This document shows positions 20,850 through 35,300 of a stretch of DNA of 64,000 nt, one piece after another. Under the pieces are notes generated by a model that made no database searches, was not told where the DNA came from, and saw only the letters and a list, made by a program, of their open reading frames with translations. How positions within the stretch are numbered: the first letter of the stretch is position 1; each line of letters begins with the position of its first letter. Made by a program: the position numbers and the translations under genes. The DNA lies in assembly GCF_033153115.1 (NCBI RefSeq), contig NW_026889803.1:1240001-1304000 (forward strand). Direction: 5' to 3'. The stretch comes from Saccostrea echinata. Taxonomy: Eukaryota.

Positions 20850-21254
20850 GTCAGCCGGTTTGCAGTGAACCCGAAGGACATAACAATCCAGGAACGGTTA
20901 GTCTTTTGACAGTTAGCATAAAAGGTAATTATTTCATCGTAAATTGCTTGCAAATTATACTTTGAGAAAACCCCCAAAGTTCTGCGATTTTGGCAGAAAT
21001 TGTAAAATACGAGAGTGGGTCGGTTGTCCTTGACACATTCACGACTCTGCAGGCTGAATATTTACGGTTGTACGTGCCAAGGTTGTTTCAAGGAACTTGA
21101 GTTTGTTGATCTGTATATTCAATCTAGTTTCTTTGACTTTGTATCAGGTATGTTCATGTATTGACAAGTGCACCATATTTTCAGACAGAAAACTCGTTAG
21201 GTTTCATCCAGGAAGACTTGTCTTGCCTATTACTCATTGATTTCCTGTTAGTGG

Positions 21255-21480
21255 TGTAGTATCTGTGCGACTGTCCCGTGGTACGACTTACTGACGAGGC
21301 TACGTCAGATGGCGGGACAGTCGCACGGATCTCTTTCAGCGCCAAGATGTCAGACGGACAAGACGTGCTGCAGAGACGGTGAGTCAGCCCGGGCCAGAAC
21401 CCACTACAGAGTATATTGTATATTTGTATATAGTGATAATAAATATTGTTATAAGTACTATACCCCCGGCAGTTACTTTA
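21255..21480 (+). repeat. 5' LTR
   Basis: TGTAGTATCT...AGTTACTTTA; identical to 29057-29282 by eye; AATAAA at 21438. Confidence 0.95.
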
Positions 21481-21481
21481 C

Positions 21482-21501
21482 TGGCGCCCAACTCGCGGGG
21501 C
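21482..21501 (+). other. Primer-binding site, tRNA-Lys type
   Basis: TGGCGCCCAACTCGCGGGGC, 1 nt after the LTR; first 11 nt match the canonical Lys PBS TGGCGCCCAACGTGGGGC. Confidence 0.8.
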
Positions 21502-21736
21502 CCGGTGCTAGATTCCCGTACTGCTGTCAGGAAAAATTTTTTTTTTTTTTTTGGCATTGTTTTTAGCCGCCATTTTTGGTGCTGAGAGCACGTGTGATAG
21601 TTGCAAATTTTTTTTTGATTCTGATGCAATAATTTTTTGAATCAACTGGAATTAATTTGTGTATATATTTATTGCAAGTGATTTAGTGATTTTGTAGACT
21701 GTGATTTTATTTGAAAACTATTTTGTACCATTTATT

Positions 21737-24700
21737 ATGAATATGTCCCTGGAGGAAGCCGTGTCGGCTTTAGGTATGGGTAGTGACCCGGCTATCACGC
21801 GGTCAGACAATATCACCCCTCACACTCCGGGTAGGGTGGGGGGATACCCCGGGGAGGGGGGTTATTCGCCATACGCTTATAGCGGGAGTGAGCATTTTGC
21901 CTCCCGTCACACACCTTTTGCTCAGTCAATGTCAGGCCACATGGGAGGGGGGTTGCCCCTGGGGGGTCCCTCTACACCTATGCCCGGCCTGCACTCGGGC
22001 ATCCCCTGTGGGGAGGGTAGTGTATTTCATGGAGAGTCAGGAAAAGAGGTAAGGTTTGCCCAGCCTCAATTTGGCTCACCAGGGATGATGTCAAGTGACT
22101 CCCTGGTGTCCTCTCTAGGTAGCCTGTGTAGGTGTAGCTCACCTGGTAGCACTGTGGGTTGTACCCACCCTAAACAAGAATATAGTGAGGCCCCTTCAAA
22201 TTCAGGGTTAGAGCATCCATATTCTTTAGGGCATGTGCATTCAGTTAGTAGCCACCCTGTCCTTGTGGGAGACATAGCTAACCTGGGGGGCCCTGCTACT
22301 ATGGGTTATAGACCAAGCCGCTTGGGTGAGGTTGTACCACACCCACTTGACCCCGCCCTTCCGTCCCATACACCGTGTGCTAGTCAGCAACCTGAGAGGC
22401 CTGTGAGGCCCGCACAGCTCACCTCCGAGTATGATCGTCAACATGTGAGGCCCGTAGATCCTGTAGGGCTCACCTGGGACCCTGCACCCATACAGAGCCA
22501 ACCTAGACTAGCAGATTTTGGTGCGCCCTCTCTCCCTGGGGATGATTTGCAACCCCGGAGCTCAATGCCACGCACTATATCTGCCCCAGCCCCTGTAAAT
22601 GTTGGAGTGTCCCCAGCAATGGTTCATTCACAAGTAAATCCTTTAGACACTGGTGTGACTGCTGCAAGACCCCACCCTATATCATTGTATGCTAGTTCCT
22701 CAAGCACACCTTACCATGCGCCCCAATCAGTGTACATCAATCCTGGGGGTAGGCATGCCCAACCCCCAGTACCCGACCACGCCCATTCTGTGTTGTATCG
22801 AGGCGAGAGTACTCCAGCCACACTCCATGGTATGGCTATGCCCAGTGCACTGCAGCACCATAGTGTTCCTGTGTCAATGACTTGTAGTCTTGCCCATCCC
22901 AATACCCCAGCCTGCCATTTTGGAAGGGAGGGGGAGAGGATAGCACATGTTCAACCTAACATGTATGGGGCAGCCCATCCGGGATACTATGCTAGTCAGT
23001 CAGTCCCGGCTAACCAGGCTTGCAACTTTAGTACACCAATACATTATGGCTCACCTGGTTACCAGGGCACCACACCATACCCAGGTAGGGCAGCCACTGG
23101 GGGTAAGCCCCGGTATAAGGACCTTAGGTATGATGGTAAGACCAGCTGGAAGGCATTTTTGCACAAGTTCGTTAGATTATCTCGCAGCCAGCTATGGACA
23201 GAGGAGGAGCAGCACGACCAGTTTTGTTTCTGCCTTGAGGGGGCAGCAAGCGAATACTATACCTTGCTGTTGGAAACCAGTAGCCAGCTCTGCCTAGGTG
23301 AGATCTTGCAGAGATTTGAGAAGCGTTTTGGCTCCTCTGCCCCCGATCTCACTCATCAACTCAACTTCCAGGCTGCCAATCAGAATCCAGGAGAGTCACT
23401 TCGTCAGTGGGCAGACAGGGTGCTGACTTTGGCGACACGAGCCTTCCCTTGTGTGCCGGACGTGCACACACACGCCATACCTAGGCTATGTTATGGAGCC
23501 GAGGACCGAGACGCTGGCCTTTACGCACTCGATGGGCATCCCAGGACCGTGGATGAAGCCGTGGAGCGAATGCAGTTCTACCAGCACTCCCGGCTACATA
23601 GGCCTAAGACCAAGAAAGAGCTGCGGAAGGTGATCTCTGATGAGGATGCCGAACAGGACGATCCCGGGACGGTAAATGTTGCTGCTGGGGAGGAGCTGGA
23701 AGCCCTCCGGAGCAGAATGGAAAAGCTGGAACAAGCTGTTAAGCAGACAGGATCTGCCCCCCTCCCTAAACCCCAGTGGACTGGTACCCTGCCACCCAGA
23801 TTGGCAGAGCGAAACCCGAAGTCCACTGTGTGTTTTAAGTGTGGAGAGGTGGGGCATTTTCGTAGAGATTGCCCCACCCAAGCTGCTGGGAAGTTAGTAG
23901 CTACTGATGGGCCGCGGGGCGGAGCCCGGATGAAGGGACCCCTTGGTGAGAGGTATCGTAGGCCAGAGTCCCAGGAGAGGGGACCTAGAAGTGGAAGGCC
24001 TGGATCCCAGGGAGGGCCCTCCCAGGCAGTTCGATTTATGAACCCAGAGCAGTCCCCAGAGAGGACAGACTCGGAGAGTAAGGAGCAGGGGGCTAGTCAA
24101 CCCCCTTCCTGTATGCGGCGTAGGCGCAAGCGGCGCAGGCTAAGGGTCCGCTTTGAGACGCCCCAATCGCCGGAGCTATTCTCAGCTGAGGAGGAAGAGG
24201 CATCCTTGGACGAGGAAGTGGGGAAGCTTGTGGCCCCCCACTCCACTCCGGAGCCACTTGGACCAGCTCGGGATAGGACTAGGAAGTTCCAGGGCTTTTG
24301 GAGGACCAAGCCTGGTGGCTCTGGTCAGAGGTCACCAGAGGATGAGGGGAATGAGCCCACTATACCTATTGGACAGCTGCGCCCATCTACGGGGTTTTCT
24401 GTTGGTTTACTTGTGCAAGGCACACGGGTGAGTGCTGTGGTTGACACGGGGGCTGAGGTCAGTGTTTTGTCGACTCAGGTTTATGACCAGCTAGAGCCCA
24501 AGCCCCCGATACGAAGACATGTTACTATGACTCAGGCGGGTAAAGACACCAAGTTGAAAGGTTTCATAGTGGGACCCGTGGCAGTGAGCATAGGAACACA
24601 GACTCACGAGGTTGACCTTTATGTCGCCCCCTTGCAGGACCCCATGTTGCTGGGCATGGAGTTTCTTCATGCCCGGAAGGCTCAATTAGATTTAGAGCAT

Positions 24701-27700
24701 GGGACTTTGACCTTGGGAGGGGAGACAATTAAAATGAACTTCGGCAGAGCTGAGGAGATTCCGGAGGCCAGGGTGACTTTGGCCCGGAAGGTACGAGTTC
24801 CAGCTGGCTCTGTTGTTTTATGCCCCTGTCGCCTGGATCAGAAGCTGGATGATTTTGTGGTGGTCCCTGGCATTGATATGCAGTCTGATGTGCTTCTTAT
24901 GCCCCATACATACCATGTGGGAGGGGACAGTGCAGTAATCTGTGTAGTGAACGCTTCAGATCGGGATGTGACCTTGATGGGGGGTAGCCTTGTTGGTACT
25001 GCAGTGGAAGCTGATCCACACCAGCCTGTGCCCTACCTGGTGCGGACAGTAGGCAGCCTGGATGACGGGGATCGGGGGGCAGGAGCCACATCCCCTGAGG
25101 TGCCTGAATTTCTGCAGGATTTGTTAGAGCGCTCCTCGGTGGAACTCAGTTTAGAAGAGAGGGCCTTGCTGGCCAGTCTGCTCTCAGAATTTCAAGATGT
25201 ATTTGCTCGGAGTGAGTTTGACTTTGGGAACTTCACCGCATTAGAACACGAGATAGATACCGGAGACGCACCCCCTGTAAAGGAGCGGATGAGACGTACT
25301 CCCATGTTCTTTGCTGGTGAGGAGGAATCCCACCTTAAGAAAATGCTGGAGGCTGGTGTGATACAGCCCTCTATGTCTGAATGGGCCTCAGCTCCAGTTC
25401 TGATTAGGAAGAAAGACGGTCAGGTCAGATGGTGCCTGGACTACCGCCGTTTGAACAAGGTGACTCGGAAGGATGTATTCCCCCTGCCTTTGATAGACGA
25501 GTGCTTGGACACCCTTACAGGAAATGTGTGGTTTTCGAAGCTCGACGCCAACTCTGCCTTCCATCAGATAAAGATCCGTCCCCAGGATAGGAAGAAGACA
25601 GCATTTTTGACGAAGTATGGTCTGTTTGAGTTTGTGCGCATGGGGTTTGGTCTATGTAATGCCCCGGCTACCTTTTCTAGGGCGATGAACCTTGTACTCA
25701 GAGGCCTTACTTGGAGTATTGTTTTGGCCTTCTTAGACGATGCCCTGGTTTTAGGTCGGGACTTCTTGGATCACCTGGAGAACTTGCGATCTGTGTTCAT
25801 GCGTTTCCGGGAGTACGACTTAAAGTTTAAGCCGAAGAAATGTGAACTTTTCCAAACCAAGGTTGAATTCCTGGGGCGGCGGGTAAGCAAGGAAGGCATT
25901 GAGATGGGAGATGATTACATTGCTGTAGTCAAGGACTGGGCTGTCCCCAGCAACGCAAAGGAGGTAGAGAGGTTCCTTGGGTTTGCTAACTATCACCGGG
26001 GATTCATTGCGGGTTATGCTGAGTGGGCACTGCCCCTCTACAAGATCACAGGCAAGAAACCCTTCGTCTGGGGCCCGGAGCAGCAAGCAGCTTTTGATGG
26101 TTTAAAGAGGGCCCTTACATCTCCGCCTGTCCTGGCCCTCCCCATTCCCGATGGAGAGTTTATACTTGACACCGACGCCTCCAATGAAGCCATAGGGGCC
26201 GAACTCTCCCAGTTACAGGATGGCCAGGAGAGACCCATATCTTATGGAAGCCTCAGTCTATCCCCGGAGCAGCGCAAGTACTGCACAACCCGGAAGGAGC
26301 TGCTGGCAGTTATCCGCTTTACCCGCCTGTTTCGCCATTACTTGCTGGGGAGGAGATTTATTGTGAGGACGGACCATCATAGTCTTATTTGGCTCCTTAA
26401 CTTTAGAAACCCCCAGGATCAACTCGCCAGATGGGTGGAAGAGCTCAGCCAGTATGACATGGAGATACAGCATCGCTCAGGGCGACGCCATGTCAACGCG
26501 GATGCCCTGTCCCGGTTGCCTTCTAGTGCCATCTGTGCTGGAGCTGATGTCACCATACACCCAAGCGACTTACCTTGCGGCGGATGCCCGAAGTGTGTTA
26601 AGGCTCACCAGACCTGGAATGTCTTTGCAGAAGAAGTTGACAATGTGGCGCCCCTGGCCAGTCCTGGAAGCTGGATATATACGCCTAGCTCGGAGGTAGA
26701 AACTGTGGAGGAGACAGTTTTAGAGTCTGAGGGCAATACTGAGGAAGCAGGTGACTTGCCCTCTCCCCCTGGGACAGCCCAACCTTCAGTTAGTGAAGTG
26801 GCCTATGGTTATGTTTCTGGGGGATTGTTAGGTCGCATTGGTCATTACTCTCCCCCGGAAGTTGACTTTGAAGATGAGGAGTCAGTAGAGGGGCCCTTCC
26901 GGACCCAGATTCGCCTCACTAAGCACCCCCACTTTGTGGCAGTAGTGGGGGCACCCCCTGATGATTCTGGTAGCCCGTTGTCATTTGTGGGTTTGACCCC
27001 AGAGGAAATGAGTTTATGCCAGTCAAGGGACTCGGAAATCGGTCAATTTCTTGACTGGTTGGACGATGATGTAGCGCCAGAGGAAGGTGTGATGTTCCTT
27101 GCGAGTCCCGCAGTTAAAAACTATTGGCTCCATAGGGCGGCCTTCACCTTAGACCAGGACAAGGTCCTTTGGAAAGAGGTGGGGGAGGGGAGTGTGAAGA
27201 CTAGACTTTTAGTTGTCCCTGAGGAGTTGAGGAAGGAGGTTCTACGCCTGTGCCATGACGTCCCAGCAGCAGGCCACCAGGGCATTGATAGAACCAAGGC
27301 ACGCCTGCGTGATAGATTCTTCTGGTATGGCATGATGAGGGAGGCAGAACAGTTCGTGAGCACCTGTGGTCCTTGCAGCAGGAATAAGCATCCTCAGCGC
27401 CATTCCCGGGCAGAGATGATTAAGTACCATGCTGGCGCCCCTATGGAGAGAGTCCATCTTGATTTTCTGGGGCCCCTACCCCGGACTAAACAGGGTAATG
27501 AATATGTACTTGTCATGGTCGATCAGTTCACTAAGTGGGTGGAGTGTGTCCCTCTGCCCACTCAGACTGCTGAGGCAACAGCTACTGCTGCGGTCGATCA
27601 GCTCTTTGCTCGCTTTGGCTGTCCCTTCCAGATCTTCACCGACCAGGGTAGGAACTTTGAAAGTAAGCTCTTCACAGCAGTGTGCGACTTGTTGCAGATC

Positions 27701-28771
27701 CATAAGGCCCGCACCACTCCTTATCGCCCCTCAGCCAATGGCCAGGTAGAAAGGTATAATAGAACCCTGATGGATGCTGTGCGTTGTTATATAGACAAGG
27801 CTCAGAACTGCTGGGATGAACATCTCGCCCAGATAGCAGGTGCCTTGCGCTCTGCAGTCAACCGGAACACAGGCTTTACTGCGAACAAGCTGATGTTGGG
27901 CAGGGAAGTGAATATCCCTGCTGATCTGATGTATGCCCCACCTCAGAGGGACCCGGCTGTTGACCTTGAGGGCTACGTAGTGAATTTGGAGAAGGCCATC
28001 CAGTCAGCTCATGAGACAGCCCGGAGACGTCTCCGGACCTCAGAGGAGCGAATGAAGAGGGACTATGACTTGAAGGTCTGTGCCAGAACTTACCATGAGG
28101 GTGACCTAGTTTATGTCCTTGACACAGCTACTGTCAAGGGGAAATGCAGGAAGTTGAGCCCTTCCTGGAAGGGACCAGGTATTATCTTGAAAAAGTTGAG
28201 CTCCCACCTTTACCGAGTGAAGACCAAGCTCTCGGTGATGGTTGTCAACCATGATCGCCTGAAAAAGTGTGTAGATCGGGACATACCATTATGGCTGTCC
28301 CGGTATCAGGAGAAGTTCAGAGCCCAGTCCCAGGAAGGTGGTGAGTTAAGTAGTGTCCCATTGTCCCCAGGGGAGAAAACTCCCTCGAGTGAGGTCCCTG
28401 GACCTTCCCAGTTGAGCTCGTCCTCAGACAGCCCTCCCCGTATACCGAGAAAACGGGGGCACCCACGTAAAGTGCGGTCGCCCTCTACCGAGTCTGCTAA
28501 GTCGTCAGATGGGGATCTGACAGATTCTGAGCTCTATTGTTTCTGTCGTAGACCGGACGATGGGGGGCTAATGATTCAATGCGACCAGTGTGACGGTTGG
28601 TTCCACGGGGTTTGTGTGGGGGTCACTTCAGAGGAGGCTTCCTCCCTGGATCAGTATATCTGCCCCAATTGTATGGGGGAACCCCGGGTAGCAAACATTG
28701 GTGTTGTTCTGGAGCCCCCATCTTGGCCCAGGGTAAGACGGGTTACCCTGGCGGTTTTACAGGAATGGTGA
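21737..28771 (+). CDS. Gag-Pol polyprotein (capsid, CCHC knuckle, aspartic protease, RT, RNase H, integrase, C-terminal PHD finger)
   Basis: ORF track 21701-28771; first ATG at 21737. Gag YDGKTSW...LEGAA; CFKCGEVGHFRRDC at 23831-23872; VDTGA at 24440; RT KLDANSAFHQI...FLDD (25730); RH DTDAS; IN HHCC, DFLGP/DQGRNF/ERYNRTL, WKGP; PHD at 28532-28672. Confidence 0.96.
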   Translation: MNMSLEEAVSALGMGSDPAITRSDNITPHTPGRVGGYPGEGGYSPYAYSGSEHFASRHTPFAQSMSGHMGGGLPLGGPSTPMPGLHSGIPCGEGSVFHGESGKEVRFAQPQFGSPGMMSSDSLVSSLGSLCRCSSPGSTVGCTHPKQEYSEAPSNSGLEHPYSLGHVHSVSSHPVLVGDIANLGGPATMGYRPSRLGEVVPHPLDPALPSHTPCASQQPERPVRPAQLTSEYDRQHVRPVDPVGLTWDPAPIQSQPRLADFGAPSLPGDDLQPRSSMPRTISAPAPVNVGVSPAMVHSQVNPLDTGVTAARPHPISLYASSSSTPYHAPQSVYINPGGRHAQPPVPDHAHSVLYRGESTPATLHGMAMPSALQHHSVPVSMTCSLAHPNTPACHFGREGERIAHVQPNMYGAAHPGYYASQSVPANQACNFSTPIHYGSPGYQGTTPYPGRAATGGKPRYKDLRYDGKTSWKAFLHKFVRLSRSQLWTEEEQHDQFCFCLEGAASEYYTLLLETSSQLCLGEILQRFEKRFGSSAPDLTHQLNFQAANQNPGESLRQWADRVLTLATRAFPCVPDVHTHAIPRLCYGAEDRDAGLYALDGHPRTVDEAVERMQFYQHSRLHRPKTKKELRKVISDEDAEQDDPGTVNVAAGEELEALRSRMEKLEQAVKQTGSAPLPKPQWTGTLPPRLAERNPKSTVCFKCGEVGHFRRDCPTQAAGKLVATDGPRGGARMKGPLGERYRRPESQERGPRSGRPGSQGGPSQAVRFMNPEQSPERTDSESKEQGASQPPSCMRRRRKRRRLRVRFETPQSPELFSAEEEEASLDEEVGKLVAPHSTPEPLGPARDRTRKFQGFWRTKPGGSGQRSPEDEGNEPTIPIGQLRPSTGFSVGLLVQGTRVSAVVDTGAEVSVLSTQVYDQLEPKPPIRRHVTMTQAGKDTKLKGFIVGPVAVSIGTQTHEVDLYVAPLQDPMLLGMEFLHARKAQLDLEHGTLTLGGETIKMNFGRAEEIPEARVTLARKVRVPAGSVVLCPCRLDQKLDDFVVVPGIDMQSDVLLMPHTYHVGGDSAVICVVNASDRDVTLMGGSLVGTAVEADPHQPVPYLVRTVGSLDDGDRGAGATSPEVPEFLQDLLERSSVELSLEERALLASLLSEFQDVFARSEFDFGNFTALEHEIDTGDAPPVKERMRRTPMFFAGEEESHLKKMLEAGVIQPSMSEWASAPVLIRKKDGQVRWCLDYRRLNKVTRKDVFPLPLIDECLDTLTGNVWFSKLDANSAFHQIKIRPQDRKKTAFLTKYGLFEFVRMGFGLCNAPATFSRAMNLVLRGLTWSIVLAFLDDALVLGRDFLDHLENLRSVFMRFREYDLKFKPKKCELFQTKVEFLGRRVSKEGIEMGDDYIAVVKDWAVPSNAKEVERFLGFANYHRGFIAGYAEWALPLYKITGKKPFVWGPEQQAAFDGLKRALTSPPVLALPIPDGEFILDTDASNEAIGAELSQLQDGQERPISYGSLSLSPEQRKYCTTRKELLAVIRFTRLFRHYLLGRRFIVRTDHHSLIWLLNFRNPQDQLARWVEELSQYDMEIQHRSGRRHVNADALSRLPSSAICAGADVTIHPSDLPCGGCPKCVKAHQTWNVFAEEVDNVAPLASPGSWIYTPSSEVETVEETVLESEGNTEEAGDLPSPPGTAQPSVSEVAYGYVSGGLLGRIGHYSPPEVDFEDEESVEGPFRTQIRLTKHPHFVAVVGAPPDDSGSPLSFVGLTPEEMSLCQSRDSEIGQFLDWLDDDVAPEEGVMFLASPAVKNYWLHRAAFTLDQDKVLWKEVGEGSVKTRLLVVPEELRKEVLRLCHDVPAAGHQGIDRTKARLRDRFFWYGMMREAEQFVSTCGPCSRNKHPQRHSRAEMIKYHAGAPMERVHLDFLGPLPRTKQGNEYVLVMVDQFTKWVECVPLPTQTAEATATAAVDQLFARFGCPFQIFTDQGRNFESKLFTAVCDLLQIHKARTTPYRPSANGQVERYNRTLMDAVRCYIDKAQNCWDEHLAQIAGALRSAVNRNTGFTANKLMLGREVNIPADLMYAPPQRDPAVDLEGYVVNLEKAIQSAHETARRRLRTSEERMKRDYDLKVCARTYHEGDLVYVLDTATVKGKCRKLSPSWKGPGIILKKLSSHLYRVKTKLSVMVVNHDRLKKCVDRDIPLWLSRYQEKFRAQSQEGGELSSVPLSPGEKTPSSEVPGPSQLSSSSDSPPRIPRKRGHPRKVRSPSTESAKSSDGDLTDSELYCFCRRPDDGGLMIQCDQCDGWFHGVCVGVTSEEASSLDQYICPNCMGEPRVANIGVVLEPPSWPRVRRVTLAVLQEW

Positions 28772-29056
28772 GTGGGTCAGCTGGTTGTGACCCGCTCTAG
28801 CGTACCCTGCCAGGCCAGACTCTTTACCTGGGAACTATCCCGGACTCTAGGGCCTGGAAGTGTTTAATTGGGAGCGATCCCAGACCCCTTTTTCCCAGGA
28901 GTTATCTTGGGTGTGTTTTATCTGGGGCTCGCCCCGGCACTAGTCGTCCCTGGGCAGTCCGCCCGGGTGGGCGTTAACAGCGCCCCATCGTTGGAGATGG
29001 TTCCGGACCCTCCCTCGCACTGTGGACTCCCGCCTTTCAAAGAAAACGGGGGGGAG

Positions 29057-29282
29057 TGTAGTATCTGTGCGACTGTCCCGTGGTACGACTTACTGACGAG
29101 GCTACGTCAGATGGCGGGACAGTCGCACGGATCTCTTTCAGCGCCAAGATGTCAGACGGACAAGACGTGCTGCAGAGACGGTGAGTCAGCCCGGGCCAGA
29201 ACCCACTACAGAGTATATTGTATATTTGTATATAGTGATAATAAATATTGTTATAAGTACTATACCCCCGGCAGTTACTTTA
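29057..29282 (+). repeat. 3' LTR
   Basis: Preceded by the polypurine tract AAGAAAACGGGGGGGAG; identical to the 5' LTR. Confidence 0.95.
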
Positions 29283-29324
29283 GTGGTAATGTGTATTGCT
29301 TAAATTTATGTTTTCAGATCAAAC

Positions 29325-32300
29325 ATGCCGGTTTTTCCACAGTACCTCACTCCGAAACAGGAGGAAGAATTGAGAAACATTGCTAAAGCCATTGTTGCTC
29401 CTGGCAAAGGAATTCTAGCTGCTGATGAATCAACAGGTAGTTATTGTACTTGATTGACTCATTCACATTCTCTGCAAACTTCAAAATTTAAATAATTTTA
29501 AAGATAATTTAGTATATTCTTCCAAATATAGGAAGACAAAAGCTAATAGTAAAATTCAGTAAGCATGATAAATGTAAATATTGATACTGATTTGATATCA
29601 CAGAGCTTAATAACCATTGCAATGCATGTGTGTCCAGTAGAAGGACTCGGTCCAGGGTTTGACACTAACATTTTTAGGCTTTAGTCTGGCCGGACTAGTG
29701 CTTCATTACTTTTACTAGTCTGCACGCAATTTTATGAGTCTGTCAAAAAAAAAAACATCAATGTTTTGTAACAGTTAATTTAAATATAAACACTGCAATG
29801 TACTTTTTATACTTTTTTGAAATAAACAAAGCATTTATGTGAAATGTTTTATTCCAAGATTCATTGAAATCTCACGGTTAGAAACTACGATCGTATTCCC
29901 GATCTCGTTCGTTTTTCTCTATACATTACATCCAAACATCTGACATCTTTCTTTATGTGTCATACTAAATCATGATCGCTAAAATGTTTAATTTCATACC
30001 AATCAGTCCTAAAATTCAGCGACGAATTGACTCGGAATTACCTAACTTCCCCCCAAGAAGCTAGAAAGCTAAAAATACATGCAGGGTTTTCCAGTGAAAG
30101 TTGTCGAGAATGAAACATCGGTAATTTATTGATTTTTTTTCCAGAAATTTGTATTAGTCCGTTCGGACTAATTAGCCACAGATTTTATTAGTCTGAATGA
30201 AAATGTATTAGTCTGAGACTAACAGACTAACATTAATGTCAAACCCTGCTGTCCCAAATTTAAAAGCAACTCTTTTGGGGGGGGGGGGGGGTCAGTAAAA
30301 TTAAATCATCAATTTTCCCCATTTTGCCACTTTTTCAAGTGAAAATTCCCTATTGAAAGGTTTCAGGTCACTGTACCAAAAAATGGTCAATTAATCCCTA
30401 TATCATATTCGGTTGTACTTAATTTTTTCAAACCCATGGTAACTGATACAAGTGTTTTGACTTGATATATATTAAGTCTTTTAATCAATACATTTTTAGC
30501 TCACCTCGACGAAGTCGAGATGAGCTTATGCTATACCCCCGGCGTCGGCGTCGGCGTTAGCGTCGACGTCCCGGTTAAAGTTTTAGGAGCAAGTCCCATT
30601 CCCAAGTTACTATAAGCCCTACCTGGACCAAACTTGCATGGATGATGCATCTAGAATGGACACTGCCACACTTGCTTCGGATGCTGGATCTGACCTAGAT
30701 TTTCCAGATGAGTGACCAGGTTAAAGTTTTTGGAGCAGGTCCATTCCCAAGGAACTATACGCCCCACCTGAACCAAACTTGTATGGATGATGCATCTAGG
30801 GATGGACACTACCACACTTGCTTCGGATGCTGGATCTGACCTAGATTTTCCAGATGAGTGACCAGGTTAAAGTTTTTGGAGCAGATCCATTCCCAAGTAA
30901 CTATAAGCCCTACCTGGACCAAACTTGCTTGGATGATGCATCTAGGGATGGACACTACCACACTTGCTTCGGATGCTGGATCTGACCTAGATTTTCCAGA
31001 TGAGTGACCAGGTTAAAGTTTTTTGAGCAGGTCCATTCCCAAGTAACTATACGCCCTACCTGGACCAAACTTGCATGGATGATGCATCTAGGGATGAACA
31101 CTACACACTTGCTTCGGATGCTGAATCTGACCTACATTTTTCAGATGAGTGACCAGGTTAAAGTTTTTGGAGCAGATCCATTCCCAAGTAACTATAAGCC
31201 CTACCTGGACCAAACTTGCATGGATGATGCATCTAGGGATGGACACTACCACACTTGCTTCGGATGCTGAATCTAATCTAGATTTTCCAGATGAGTGACC
31301 AGGTTAAAGTTTTTGGAGCAGGTCCATTCCCAAGTAACTATAGGCCCTACCTGAACCAAATTTGCATGGATGATGCATCTAGGGATGGACACTACCACAC
31401 TTGCTTCGGATGCTGGATCTGACCTAGATTTTCCAGATGAGTGACCAGGTTAAAGTTTTTGGAGCAGGTCCATTCCCAAGTAACTATAGGCCCTACCTGA
31501 ACCAAACTTGCATGGATGATGCATCTAGGGATGGACACTACCACACTTGCTTCGGATGCTGAATCTGACCTAGATTTTCCAGATGAGTGACCAGGTTAAA
31601 GTTTTTGGAGCAGATCCTTTCCCAAGTAACTATAAGCCCTACCTGAACCAAACTTGCATGGATGATGCATATAGGGATGGACACTACCACACTTGCTTCG
31701 GATGCTGGATCTGACCTAGATTTTCCAGATGAGTGACCAGGTTAAAGTTTTTGGAGCAGGTCCATTCCCAAGTAACTATACGCCCTACCTGGACCAAACT
31801 TGCATGGATGATGCATCTAGGGATGAACACTACACACTTGCTTCGGATGCTGAATCTGACCTACATTTTCCAGATGAGTGACCAGGTTAAAGTTTTTTGA
31901 GCAGGTCTATTTCCAAGTAATTATAAGTCCTTCTTAAACCAAACTTGTATAGATATTGATCTTGGGATGTTCACTAACTAGAAAAAATATGATGTGAGAT
32001 TTGCCTTACTTATAGATAACCTTCGTCGAGGTGAGCTTCGTAATCTTTGATTACCTATGTTTTTATAGGTAATATGCTAAATATTGTCTTGCGTACTGTT
32101 GCCTATTTGAAAATTCTTCACAACGAATGTTATTATCAGAGTGTATACAACTATGAGTAGGAAAATGACAGTGTTTAATAGATATCTGCAATAGTTCATG
32201 CATGATAATGTATATGTGTTCAGGTTCCATTGGAAAGAGATTTGCTCCCATAAATGTGGAGAACTCTGAGGAAAACAGGAGGCGCTACAGGGAGCTGTTG

Positions 32301-35300
32301 TTCACATCTGACAAAGTTGCAGCAGAAAACATTAGTGGTGTCATCATGTTCCATGAAACATTTTATCAAAAAACTAAGAGTGGAGTTCCATTTACAAAAG
32401 TTCTGCAAGACAAGGGTATCATTCCAGGAATCAAAGTGGATAAAGGTGTTGTCCCACTTGCTGGCACAGAGAATGAGTGTACTACACAGGGTAGGATTAT
32501 TTTTTTGTGTGCATATAAATGTTTGAAAAATAATCAATGTATAGGATCATTCCATGGCAGATGTTTGTTATAGGCCTGTCTTGATACAGAATATCATGAC
32601 TAATGTGGAACTCAATTAGATTTCTAGAAGTTTTTTATACTTGAAATTCTTGTTAAGGTCTGGATGGATTGTCAGAAAGATGTGCACAGTACAAAAAAGA
32701 TGGTGCCCAGTTTGCTAAATGGCGTTGTGTTCTAAAAATCCAGCAATACACACCTTCCTACCAGGCCATGTTAGAGAATGCCAATGTCTTGGCCCGTTAT
32801 GCCAGCATTTGTCAGCAGGTAAGACAAGTATACATTTGATGTGATACAGTTAAATATTTACATTTGCTGTGTTTTTCTACAAAACCAACTATGAAAATGA
32901 TTTGAATGCCATTTTTGTGTATACTCATGCATAGAAATATACATGGAGATACTTGCGCTAAACATTACAATAAGGCTAAAGAGACAATAAAAATATAACA
33001 ATAAAGGGCAGCAATAAATTCAAAGCTTGAGTGTATTTTTTCTGCTTTTAAACATGTAAAATGTAAATATGAAGAAAGTTTTTTAGTTTTGTGTGAGTTA
33101 TTGGTTTTTAAATCACACAGACTTGCATGTAGGCTTATTTTATGAAGTACTAGCAATCCTAAATTATCTTCTCAGTTCAGAATGTAAGGACATGTTTCAT
33201 TTTATCAATTTGTGTTCATTAGCAGTGTTTGAATCTCACTATGAAAATAGCTAGACAGGCAGGGCTGACTGCCATTGAAAGTTGTCAGCCCTGCCAAAGA
33301 TCTACTAGCCTGATAAAAAGAGGTCATTTTCAAAAATGATTTTTATTACATATGTAAAACCATGGAATTTGTTAACATGGTCTGCCTTGCAAGTGGCCGG
33401 CAAGTTGCAATCCTAAAAAGTCATTCAAAAAGCAACTTGTGTCTTCTGTGACTATAGGACTGAGTCAGCATAACGTATATAGACTGAGGAGCTCTGCCAC
33501 TTGGTTTGTTATGCTTTGCTACTGGTAAAGCTAGTTGATTTGAGATAGATTCATCAGTGAAAATTTTTAATTTGTGGAAATTTTAACATGTCCAGCCAGG
33601 TGTGATACAGTTAATCGCCTGAAGTGAAATCTTTATTTGCCTCAGATGGTCAGGCCCCCAGTTATTTCAGTCATTGTCATTAGTCATATTTCTTGCTGGT
33701 TTAGTTCCTGGATTCCAGAAATGTGATTTACTAAGATTATTTTATTCAAGATCACTTGTATTCATGTAGTTAAGAATGTATTTATCTTTTGGAAAAAGGT
33801 CATGATATAACAGTTAACTAATATTGAACCCAGATAAAGTTAGCATAAGATAATGTTTGTTTATGTCTTCTTAGGCATATTGTCCTGTAGATTGGATAGA
33901 AGTTTTAGACAATCATAGAACTTCTCTATACATGTATTGTAAAATGCTAGAAATACAAAACTTGATAGGTAAATCACATATTTCTTTTTATCTTATTTCT
34001 TTGAAACAGCAGCATTGTATTTGTTCACAAGATAAAAGTTATGCAATCATCCATAGAATGAGTACTGGTACTATGTCTTACTTAACATTATCCTAAATTG
34101 AAAACTGTGTCTGCCCAATCAATCTTGTGAAAAGCAGAAAGTTCTAGCAGTTAAATATGATGTACATTTCTCTAACCTAATATTTTTGTTTCAGAATGGC
34201 CTGGTACCCATTGTAGAACCGGAAGTTTTACCGGATGGTGATCACGACTTAGAAGCAGCACAAAAAGTCACAGAGCAAGTATGTTTTCTTCTTGCATTTA
34301 CCTTCTGTTTTTCCATGTAATGTACTATATTTCAAAAGCTCAAGTAAATCCATGGTATATTAATTAAGGTCTGATGGCAAATTTCTTTATATGCCACAGA
34401 AAACTTTGGCCATAGTTGTGGCCTAATGTTAGTTAGGGGGGAGGGGATTGGGGAGGAGGATTCATGATTTTATGAATTGATGGAATCTGAATCTACAGAT
34501 GCTTCCCTACTGAATTGACTAAAATGACTGGTTTTCTTGAGAAAACTAAAAATAAGATACTGTATATTCCTCTGTAAAATGGGAAGAAAGTGAAAATGTG
34601 AAAAGTTTACAGATGGCACCAAACTGATAGAAACTGTACACTCTTTGATAAGAAAGGCAGTAAAGCACACCTACACTTTAGGCCCAAATGAACATAACAC
34701 AAAAATTCTTTTTCTTTCATATCCCTTCATGTAAATAAAGAACTTAATCAGTCTGTATTTGACCATTGTTTGAAAGTTTATCCATGCGTGTTGTCTTAAA
34801 AGTCAGGAGACTTGACCTTCTTTACATATGTATATATTTGTCTCTAACTAGTGTCTCAAGACAAGGATTAGTTTACTGTTTTCTTGTTGAACAGGTCCTT
34901 GCATTTACATACAAAGCCCTGGCAGATCACCACGTCTATCTGGAGGGAACTTTACTAAAGCCCAACATGGTCACCGCTGGAATGAGCTGTCCCAAGAAAT
35001 TTGCTAAGGAGGACAATGCCAGAGCCACCATTCTTGCTCTCAGTAGGACAGTCCCCCCTGCTGTCCCAGGTACACTAACATTTATACATTAATATGTACA
35101 TTAGAATGCATGTAACACACAAAAAAGAAGCAGATAAATGCATTGAAAGGATATGTAGTAAAGATCAGGAATGAATGTTAATGTTAGCTCTAAAGATACA
35201 ATATTATGTCCTAAAAATGTTTCTTAAGAACTACAATTACCTTTGTGAAGAATTTTTATTTTAGGTTGATTTGTGGTTAAGTATACAGTAAAACATGCTT

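Follow-up and report, generated by a model that had tools for sequence, protein, structure and literature searches.

An integrase-terminal PHD finger of the H3K4me3-reader class in a young Ty3/Gypsy retrotransposon of Saccostrea echinata and its possible part in target choice

The stretch of Saccostrea echinata DNA analysed here (assembly GCF_033153115.1, contig NW_026889803.1, positions 1,240,001 to 1,304,000 of the forward strand; hereafter the window, 64,000 nucleotides numbered from its first letter) contains an intact 8-kb Ty3/Gypsy retrotransposon at 21255-29282 on the plus strand, bounded by 226-bp long terminal repeats (LTRs) and a 4-bp target duplication. Behind the integrase core its polyprotein carries a PHD finger that, by sequence and predicted fold, belongs to the BPTF/PHF2/PHF8/DIDO1/CFP1 group of readers of histone H3 trimethylated at lysine 4 (H3K4me3). 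Comparison of the sequences shows purifying selection on the finger among sister copies and its conservation across a deep Gypsy clade of marine, chiefly molluscan, invertebrates. We propose that this integrase uses a captured H3K4me3-class PHD finger to tether integration to active start regions, a reading to which we assign a probability of about one half.

Results

Identity and class of the finger

A sequence-only reading of the window had placed a C4HC3 PHD finger of the H3K4me3-reading class at 28532-28672, and its coordinates and quoted residues prove exact. The plus-strand frame at this position runs from Leu-Tyr-Cys through to Cys-Pro-Asn-Cys, supplies all eight zinc ligands of the C4HC3 pattern and matches Pfam PF00628 over polyprotein residues 2268-2312 with an E-value of 2.4e-10 (40.7 bits, where the cut-off is 24); the PHD_5 profile likewise scores above its own cut-off. 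A chance zinc-finger-like pattern was rejected on these E-values. The WKGP motif of the GPY/F kind and the Ser/Pro-rich linker that had been described ahead of the finger can both be read in the translation, where some 120 residues of linker separate the WKGPG motif from the finger. The finger thus named does lie in the C-terminal part of the polyprotein, as had been claimed, but it is not the very end, since the gag-pol frame extends 32 residues beyond it. Its position, C-terminal and after the GPY/F module of the integrase, is indeed the one that the chromodomain occupies in chromoviruses.

Three lines of comparison agree on the class. A phmmer search of PDB chains returned 81 PHD matches, the best of them BPTF (E 3.5e-16), with PHF2, CFP1, PHF8, DIDO1, Spp1, PPS and TAF3 among the other top matches; all of these proteins are H3K4me3 readers, and most of the entries show complexes with an H3K4me3 peptide. 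Alignment with PHF2 and PHF8 identifies the residues of the methyl-lysine cage as a Tyr before the first Cys, a Met before the third Cys and a Trp before the His (Tyr7, Met20 and Trp29 of PHF2), so that three of the four cage positions are retained.

The third line comes from structure prediction. A single-sequence AlphaFold model reached a mean predicted local distance difference test score (pLDDT) of only 50, and a model based on an alignment was used instead. With 58 aligned rows, AlphaFold2 modelled the finger core, in the absence of zinc ions, at a pLDDT of 89-95, as a cross-braced PHD fold. Foldseek searches with this model placed BPTF-H3K4me3, DIDO-H3K4me3, PPS, PHF2-H3K4me3, KDM7A and PHF8 at the top, superposing at a root-mean-square deviation of about 1 Å and 45-56% identity, with a probability of 1.00 to many PHD structures. 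A prediction of the complex between the finger, two zinc ions and residues 2-40 of histone H3 from the same genome scored 0.32, where 0.34 is the pass mark and controls gave 0.00-0.01, an outcome that we count neither for nor against histone binding.

Conservation across the clade

Searching with the integrase and its tail returned 322 polyproteins from the protein database, and PF00628 was found in nearly all of the best 100. The best named relative, a protein of 2336 residues from Ostrea edulis, shares 67% identity over the integrase and tail and 78% from reverse transcriptase (RT) to integrase (IN). An Atlas cluster of 80 members, automatically named as integrase plus PHD, has Mollusca as its commonest phylum. 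Among the top 120 relatives the finger is complete in 85, typically lying about 65 residues past the W.GP motif and in nearly all cases 0-15 residues from the end of the protein. The W.GP motif is itself nearly invariant across the 58-row alignment.

The cage is conserved as well. In 86 fingers selected by their zinc-ligand pattern, of which the cage residues form no part, Tyr or Phe occupies the first cage position in 83, Met the second in 83 and Trp the third in all 86. On a FastTree phylogeny built from the RT-to-IN region, 118 of the 120 closest relatives could be classified by C-terminus: the finger or its remnants occur in 92, reaching down to about 40% integrase identity, and the remaining 26 carry a short basic C-terminal motif instead. 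The C-terminal type changes only twice on this tree.

Within the family, the ratio of nonsynonymous to synonymous polymorphism (pN/pS), calculated from unique substitutions, is 0.28 for the integrase, 0.33 for the finger (where counts are small) and 1.22 for the linker. All of the full-length copies that were read keep the finger whole. Its clade-wide retention together with these ratios shows the finger to be old and kept by selection, whereas the linker, with a ratio of about 1.2, is relaxed.

The basic motif of the PHD-less relatives (P0083-P0120) reads roughly R-[RS]-G-R-x-[IV]-[KR]-x-P-x-[YH]-L-x-D-[YF]. We take it to resemble arginine-anchor nucleosome binders, for example the CENP-C motif, HMGN and LANA.

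Anatomy of the element

The features of the window copy, all on the plus strand, are as follows.

21251-21254, target-site duplication, left copy (GTGG), with the identical four bases at 29283-29286
21255-21480, 5' LTR of 226 bp (TGTAG...ACTTTA), a direct repeat with 0 differences from the 3' LTR
21482-21492, primer-binding site TGGCGCCCAAC, read in the sequence one base past the 5' LTR
21737-28771, gag and pol in one open reading frame, which starts at the first ATG (21737) and encodes 2344 residues plus stop
23828-23875, Gag CCHC zinc knuckle (PF00098, zf-CCHC, E 1.4e-6, residues 698-713)
24410-24670, aspartyl protease (PF13975, E 3.1e-10, residues 892-978)
25403-25879, RT (PF00078, RVT_1, E 1e-27, residues 1223-1381)
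26069-26455, RNase H (PF17917 and PF17919, E about 1e-30)
27215-27730, integrase H2C2 zinc-binding domain and catalytic core (PF17921, Integrase_H2C2, E 3.8e-19; PF00665, rve, E 2.9e-14)
28166-28180, GPY/F-type motif WKGPG of the integrase C-terminal domain, from the translation
28301-28531, Ser/Pro-rich linker, from the translation
28532-28672, C4HC3 PHD finger of the H3K4me3-reader class (PF00628)
29039-29055, polypurine tract, a purine run directly 5' of the 3' LTR
29057-29282, 3' LTR, direct repeat of the 5' LTR
29283-29286, target-site duplication, right copy (GTGG), matching the left copy

The open frame that holds gag-pol spans 21701-28771 (2357 codons). Protease, RT, RNase H and integrase follow one another on this single frame in the Pfam matches, the order that defines Ty3/Gypsy elements (Metaviridae), and the direct LTRs, the short target duplication, the primer-binding site and the polypurine tract accord with that placement. 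We take the primer-binding site TGGCGCCCAAC to be like the 3' end of tRNA-Lys, a putative match; a search of the window for a tRNA gene as its partner found none. No Chromo family occurs among the Pfam matches of the polyprotein, whose C-terminal domain is the PHD finger, and a chromovirus identity was rejected on this ground. The possibility that the finger is an exon of a host gene was rejected, since it lies between LTRs flanked by a target duplication and recurs in many copies. The element has a G+C content of about 53%, compared with about 34% for the host background. By direct counts on the window copy, the observed-to-expected ratio of CpG dinucleotides (CpG o/e) is 1.09 in the LTR and 0.45 in the depleted coding part.

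The linker holds, at 28445-28474, a degenerate AT-hook-like stretch (PRKRGHPRKV, with an RGHP core), and at the corresponding position the relative from Ostrea edulis shows a canonical RGRP core. The stretch was present in none of the 84 other clade members checked; these have a short linker of about 65 residues from W.GP to the finger.

Copies within the genome

The element is intact, multi-copy and young. Comparison of its last 213 residues with the 923-Mb genome recovered at least 22 copies at 84-100% amino acid identity, and at least 8 copies besides that of the window keep the full 2357-codon frame open. All 11 copies with both flanks available have perfect 4-bp target duplications, and in 10 of these 11 the LTR pairs differ at 0-3 positions. 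The family must therefore have moved very recently. When the genome was searched with the LTR, the 40 matches scored were mostly pairs 7.4-9.6 kb apart, with about 7.8 kb as a usual spacing; a few had a partner LTR that was not one of these 40.

Matches at 37-57% identity that extend over the finger reveal at least two further Gypsy families in this genome, with long open frames of 1396-2146 residues; several PHD-bearing Gypsy lineages thus coexist in it. The following loci include members of these families.

G000:C6:4156320-4156688
C27:14338852-14339220
C36:10148634-10149002
C25:26564217-26564783

Some copies of the window family exceed 8 kb, with 8.9, 9.1, 9.6 or 23 kb between their LTRs; these are probably insertions or nested elements. 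One subfamily has a frame of 2725 codons and a different tail after the finger. The longer copies lie at the positions listed here.

G000:C33:4614450-4623583
C16:24981082-24989994
C32:1462599-1472203
C60:4733486-4756708

Discussion

A candidate tether and the evidence of insertion sites

In the mechanism that we propose, the integrase continues after its GPY/F module into a flexible linker and then into a BPTF/PHF2/PHF8/DIDO1/CFP1-type PHD finger, which would stay on the mature integrase. The finger would bind the tail of histone H3 carrying K4me3 or K4me2, and so bound it would tether the intasome to the nucleosomes around active, unmethylated transcription start regions, thereby biasing integration toward them. 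Such a tether would mirror, on the euchromatic side, the chromodomain of chromoviruses, and would build into the element what murine leukaemia virus (MLV) and HIV obtain from host readers, BET proteins and LEDGF respectively.

Insertion sites give a hint of such targeting. Unmethylated DNA in the mosaically methylated genomes of invertebrates includes promoters, and CpG o/e was used as a proxy for germline-unmethylated DNA around the 11 two-sided insertion sites. Within 500 bp of the sites, a distance picked post hoc after three sizes had been looked at, pooled CpG o/e is 0.90 compared with 0.64 for background (resampling p 0.003); beyond 500 bp it is 0.62-0.71, and in the rest of the window 0.51. 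Ranked among 1-kb windows from its own locus, the insertion site lies above the median in 10 of the 11 loci, at a mean percentile of 0.78 (p about 0.0008).

Several observations weigh against promoter targeting by an H3K4me3 reader, beginning with that choice of distance. CpG o/e stands in only indirectly for unmethylated or H3K4me3-bearing chromatin, and the comparison covers insertions of this PHD-bearing family alone. Nine older copies, for which about 1 kb of 3' flank alone was used, give 0.80 against 0.65 when pooled, with the near flank exceeding the far one in only five of the nine. Some sites have as their neighbours, 0.5-2 kb away, a DDE_3 (Tc1-like) sequence, an endonuclease of a long interspersed nuclear element (LINE) or a Harbinger DDE in place of any recognisable gene, and a Mab-21-like frame lies 3.3 kb upstream of one site. 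Counts of ETS, CRE, NRF1, E-box, YY1, Sp1, NFY, TATA and ZNF143 motifs near the 11 sites, in which palindromes were counted twice, are too small to decide the matter. Finally, this family carries Asp where BPTF, PHF2 and PHF8 have the Tyr of the fourth cage position, within a loop that is shorter by one residue; across 86 relatives Asp occupies this position in 46 and Trp or Tyr in 25.

The Mab-21-like frame just mentioned (L033:2-1672, on G000:C58) encodes 557 residues comprising a remnant of a Mab-21 (cGAS-like) nucleotidyltransferase, an HhH domain and a TPR match.

Other roles for the finger

The finger might bind H3 tails generally, or some other N-terminal peptide, and serve nuclear retention or nucleosome capture with no specificity for promoters. 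The CpG pattern would then reflect a general bias toward open DNA, or the early removal by selection of insertions elsewhere. Retroviral-type integrases all prefer nucleosomal or open targets, and the CpG signal is indeed weak and was not replicated in the older copies. Furthermore, the Foldseek matches include PHF2 with a VRK1 peptide, so that this class of PHD finger can bind non-histone N-terminal peptides, and the short basic motif of the sister clade looks like a nucleosome binder indifferent to histone marks. A mark-blind binder, however, would have no need of the cage Tyr, Met and Trp, which are kept almost without exception, and we consider this explanation unlikely.

Equally, the finger could act after integration or apart from it. 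As part of Gag-Pol or of free integrase-PHD, it might recognise H3K4me3 on the LTR of the element itself, or bring in host factors, and so keep copies transcribed or shielded from silencing. Precedent is found in the methyltransferases, demethylases and methyl-CpG-binding (MBD) domains that retroelements have also captured and that are thought to act on the elements' own chromatin; the CpG o/e of the LTR, 1.09 compared with 0.45 in the coding part, points the same way. Set against this is the location of the domain, for the integrase C-terminus is the site of targeting modules in Ty3/Gypsy elements, Ty5 and retroviruses (Gao et al. 2008, as cited elsewhere), and a regulatory protein would more likely be encoded as a separate frame. 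This role seems to us improbable.

That the finger is a mere passenger, a recent and functionless capture of a host exon in one family, draws on nothing beyond the general fact that transposons acquire host fragments, and is scarcely credible for a domain found whole or as a remnant in 92 of 118 classifiable relatives with two state changes on the tree, with a pN/pS (0.33) near that of the integrase against 1.22 for the linker, and intact in all full-length copies read.

It is tempting to extend the proposed tethering by the integrase finger from this family to its relatives, such that a deep, mollusc-centred clade as a whole would aim its integration, through a built-in H3K4me3 reader, at active and unmethylated start regions. 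In a nested sister group a short Arg-rich motif has taken the place of the finger, and the two types have exchanged only twice; the integrase C-terminus may therefore be an exchangeable slot for chromatin tethers, in which the Arg-rich motif may bind the nucleosomal acidic patch. We offer this wider proposition tentatively, judging the odds to be somewhat against it.

Relation to known systems

Fusions of PHD fingers to retroelements are already catalogued as a kind, and the integrase-terminal form described here is a new variant of them. A survey of 172 eukaryotes reported 823 fusions of chromatin domains with transposons, mostly of Chromo and PHD domains, including cnidarian retrotransposons with PYGO-like PHD fingers that were noted as readers of H3K4 methylation (bioRxiv 10.1101/2021.11.30.470311). 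The sequence-only reading had thus overstated the novelty of the arrangement. It had also placed the known PHD fingers of retroelements in ORF1 or Gag, a restriction that is wrong because Gypsy-7a_cRei of Chlamydomonas, an element whose insertions avoid coding sequence, carries one inside Pol. REM1 carries a PHD finger as well, as does a CR1 LINE (Kapitonov and Jurka 2003, as cited elsewhere), and one Ginger1 transposase with a Gypsy-like integrase ends in Ulp1 and PHD domains. A literature search returned no paper on the present metazoan clade of PHD-bearing Gypsy elements or on its targeting.

These catalogued fusions (cnidarian, Gypsy-7a_cRei, REM1 and CR1) share with ours a PHD finger encoded inside a retroelement protein. 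The cnidarian fingers are, however, of the PYGO type, whereas ours falls in the BPTF/PHF2/PHF8/DIDO1/CFP1 subgroup. In Gypsy-7a_cRei the PHD precedes the integrase, to judge from a figure legend that lists it before INT, whereas here it occupies the extreme C-terminus of the integrase. The hosts differ too, those of the present clade being mollusc-centred marine invertebrates.

The closest parallel in architecture is provided by the chromoviruses, among them MAGGY and Tf1, whose chromodomain lies at the C-terminus of a Gypsy integrase (Gao et al. 2008, as cited elsewhere). In both cases a reader directly follows the GPY/F module, is conserved clade-wide and is proposed to tether integration to marked nucleosomes. 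The chromodomain reads H3K9 methylation in heterochromatin, whereas a PHD finger would be expected to select active, unmethylated chromatin; furthermore, targeting has been demonstrated for chromodomains and is proposed here by analogy with them.

A second comparison is with the host readers themselves (BPTF, PHF2, PHF8, KDM7A, DIDO1, CFP1/Spp1, PPS and TAF3), which the finger resembles at 45-56% identity, in the spacing of its ligands and in a fold that superposes to about 1 Å. PHF2 and PHF8 have the same Tyr/Met/Trp cage, although in these two and in BPTF the cage Met is preceded by a loop longer by one residue. In the host the PHD is borne by a remodeller or a demethylase; here it is borne by an integrase. 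As in the pairings of MLV integrase with BET proteins and of HIV integrase with LEDGF/p75, a C-terminal segment of the integrase would link the intasome to the marks of active genes or start sites; in these viruses the reader belongs to the host and is borrowed through a short peptide, whereas here it is encoded by the element. Lastly, CopiaMBD of arthropods (PMC6673714) is likewise an LTR retrotransposon that captured a host epigenetic reader thought to guide insertion, but it is a Copia element whose methyl-CpG-binding domain recognises methylated DNA, the opposite chromatin state to that expected for the present Gypsy.

If tethering by the integrase finger is correct, the family would be a natural case of an LTR retrotransposon that encodes its own reader of the active-promoter mark, comparable to the chromodomain elements that read the opposite one. 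It would illustrate how mobile elements can last in a genome although they insert beside genes, and could help to explain polymorphism of gene-near insertions in bivalves, a group with many young elements in its genomes. Since one genome harbours both PHD-bearing families and relatives that lack the finger, and since the family is young and has many open frames, a direct comparison between them is feasible.

The aldolase neighbourhood of the window copy

The window copy illustrates what an insertion of this kind may cost, lying as it does some 35 bp before a splice acceptor at the 5' end of a glycolytic gene. The claim that this neighbour is aldolase is confirmed exon by exon: PF00274 matches six plus-strand exons across 29367-35713. 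The first of these is the following.

29318-29456, plus strand, start-codon exon of host aldolase (acceptor AG at 29316-29317, ATG at 29326; PF00274 positions 1-30 at 29367-29456)

With the 3' LTR ending at 29282 and the acceptor at 29316-29317, the element lies in the sense orientation about 35 bp ahead of the acceptor, presumably inside a 5'-untranslated-region intron or the proximal promoter of aldolase. A palindrome of the cAMP response element (CRE) occurs at about 20842, with possible donor sites at about 20921 and 21148. CpG o/e is 0.87 immediately upstream and drops to 0.20-0.58 over the aldolase gene body, in keeping with a boundary close to a start site. The position of the copy at the 5' end of aldolase agrees with the promoter-targeting reading as a single case.

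The insertion ends where a branch point is expected, about 35 bp before the acceptor. With its identical LTRs, the inserted allele may be of recent origin, and it may also be polymorphic or harmful. The opposite strand carries another aldolase gene at a distance of about 100 kb (G000:C54:1375103-1377119). Within the first long intron of the aldolase gene, about ten tandem units of 146 bp, up to 97% alike, occupy window positions 30510-31976, and this array is higher in G+C than its surroundings.

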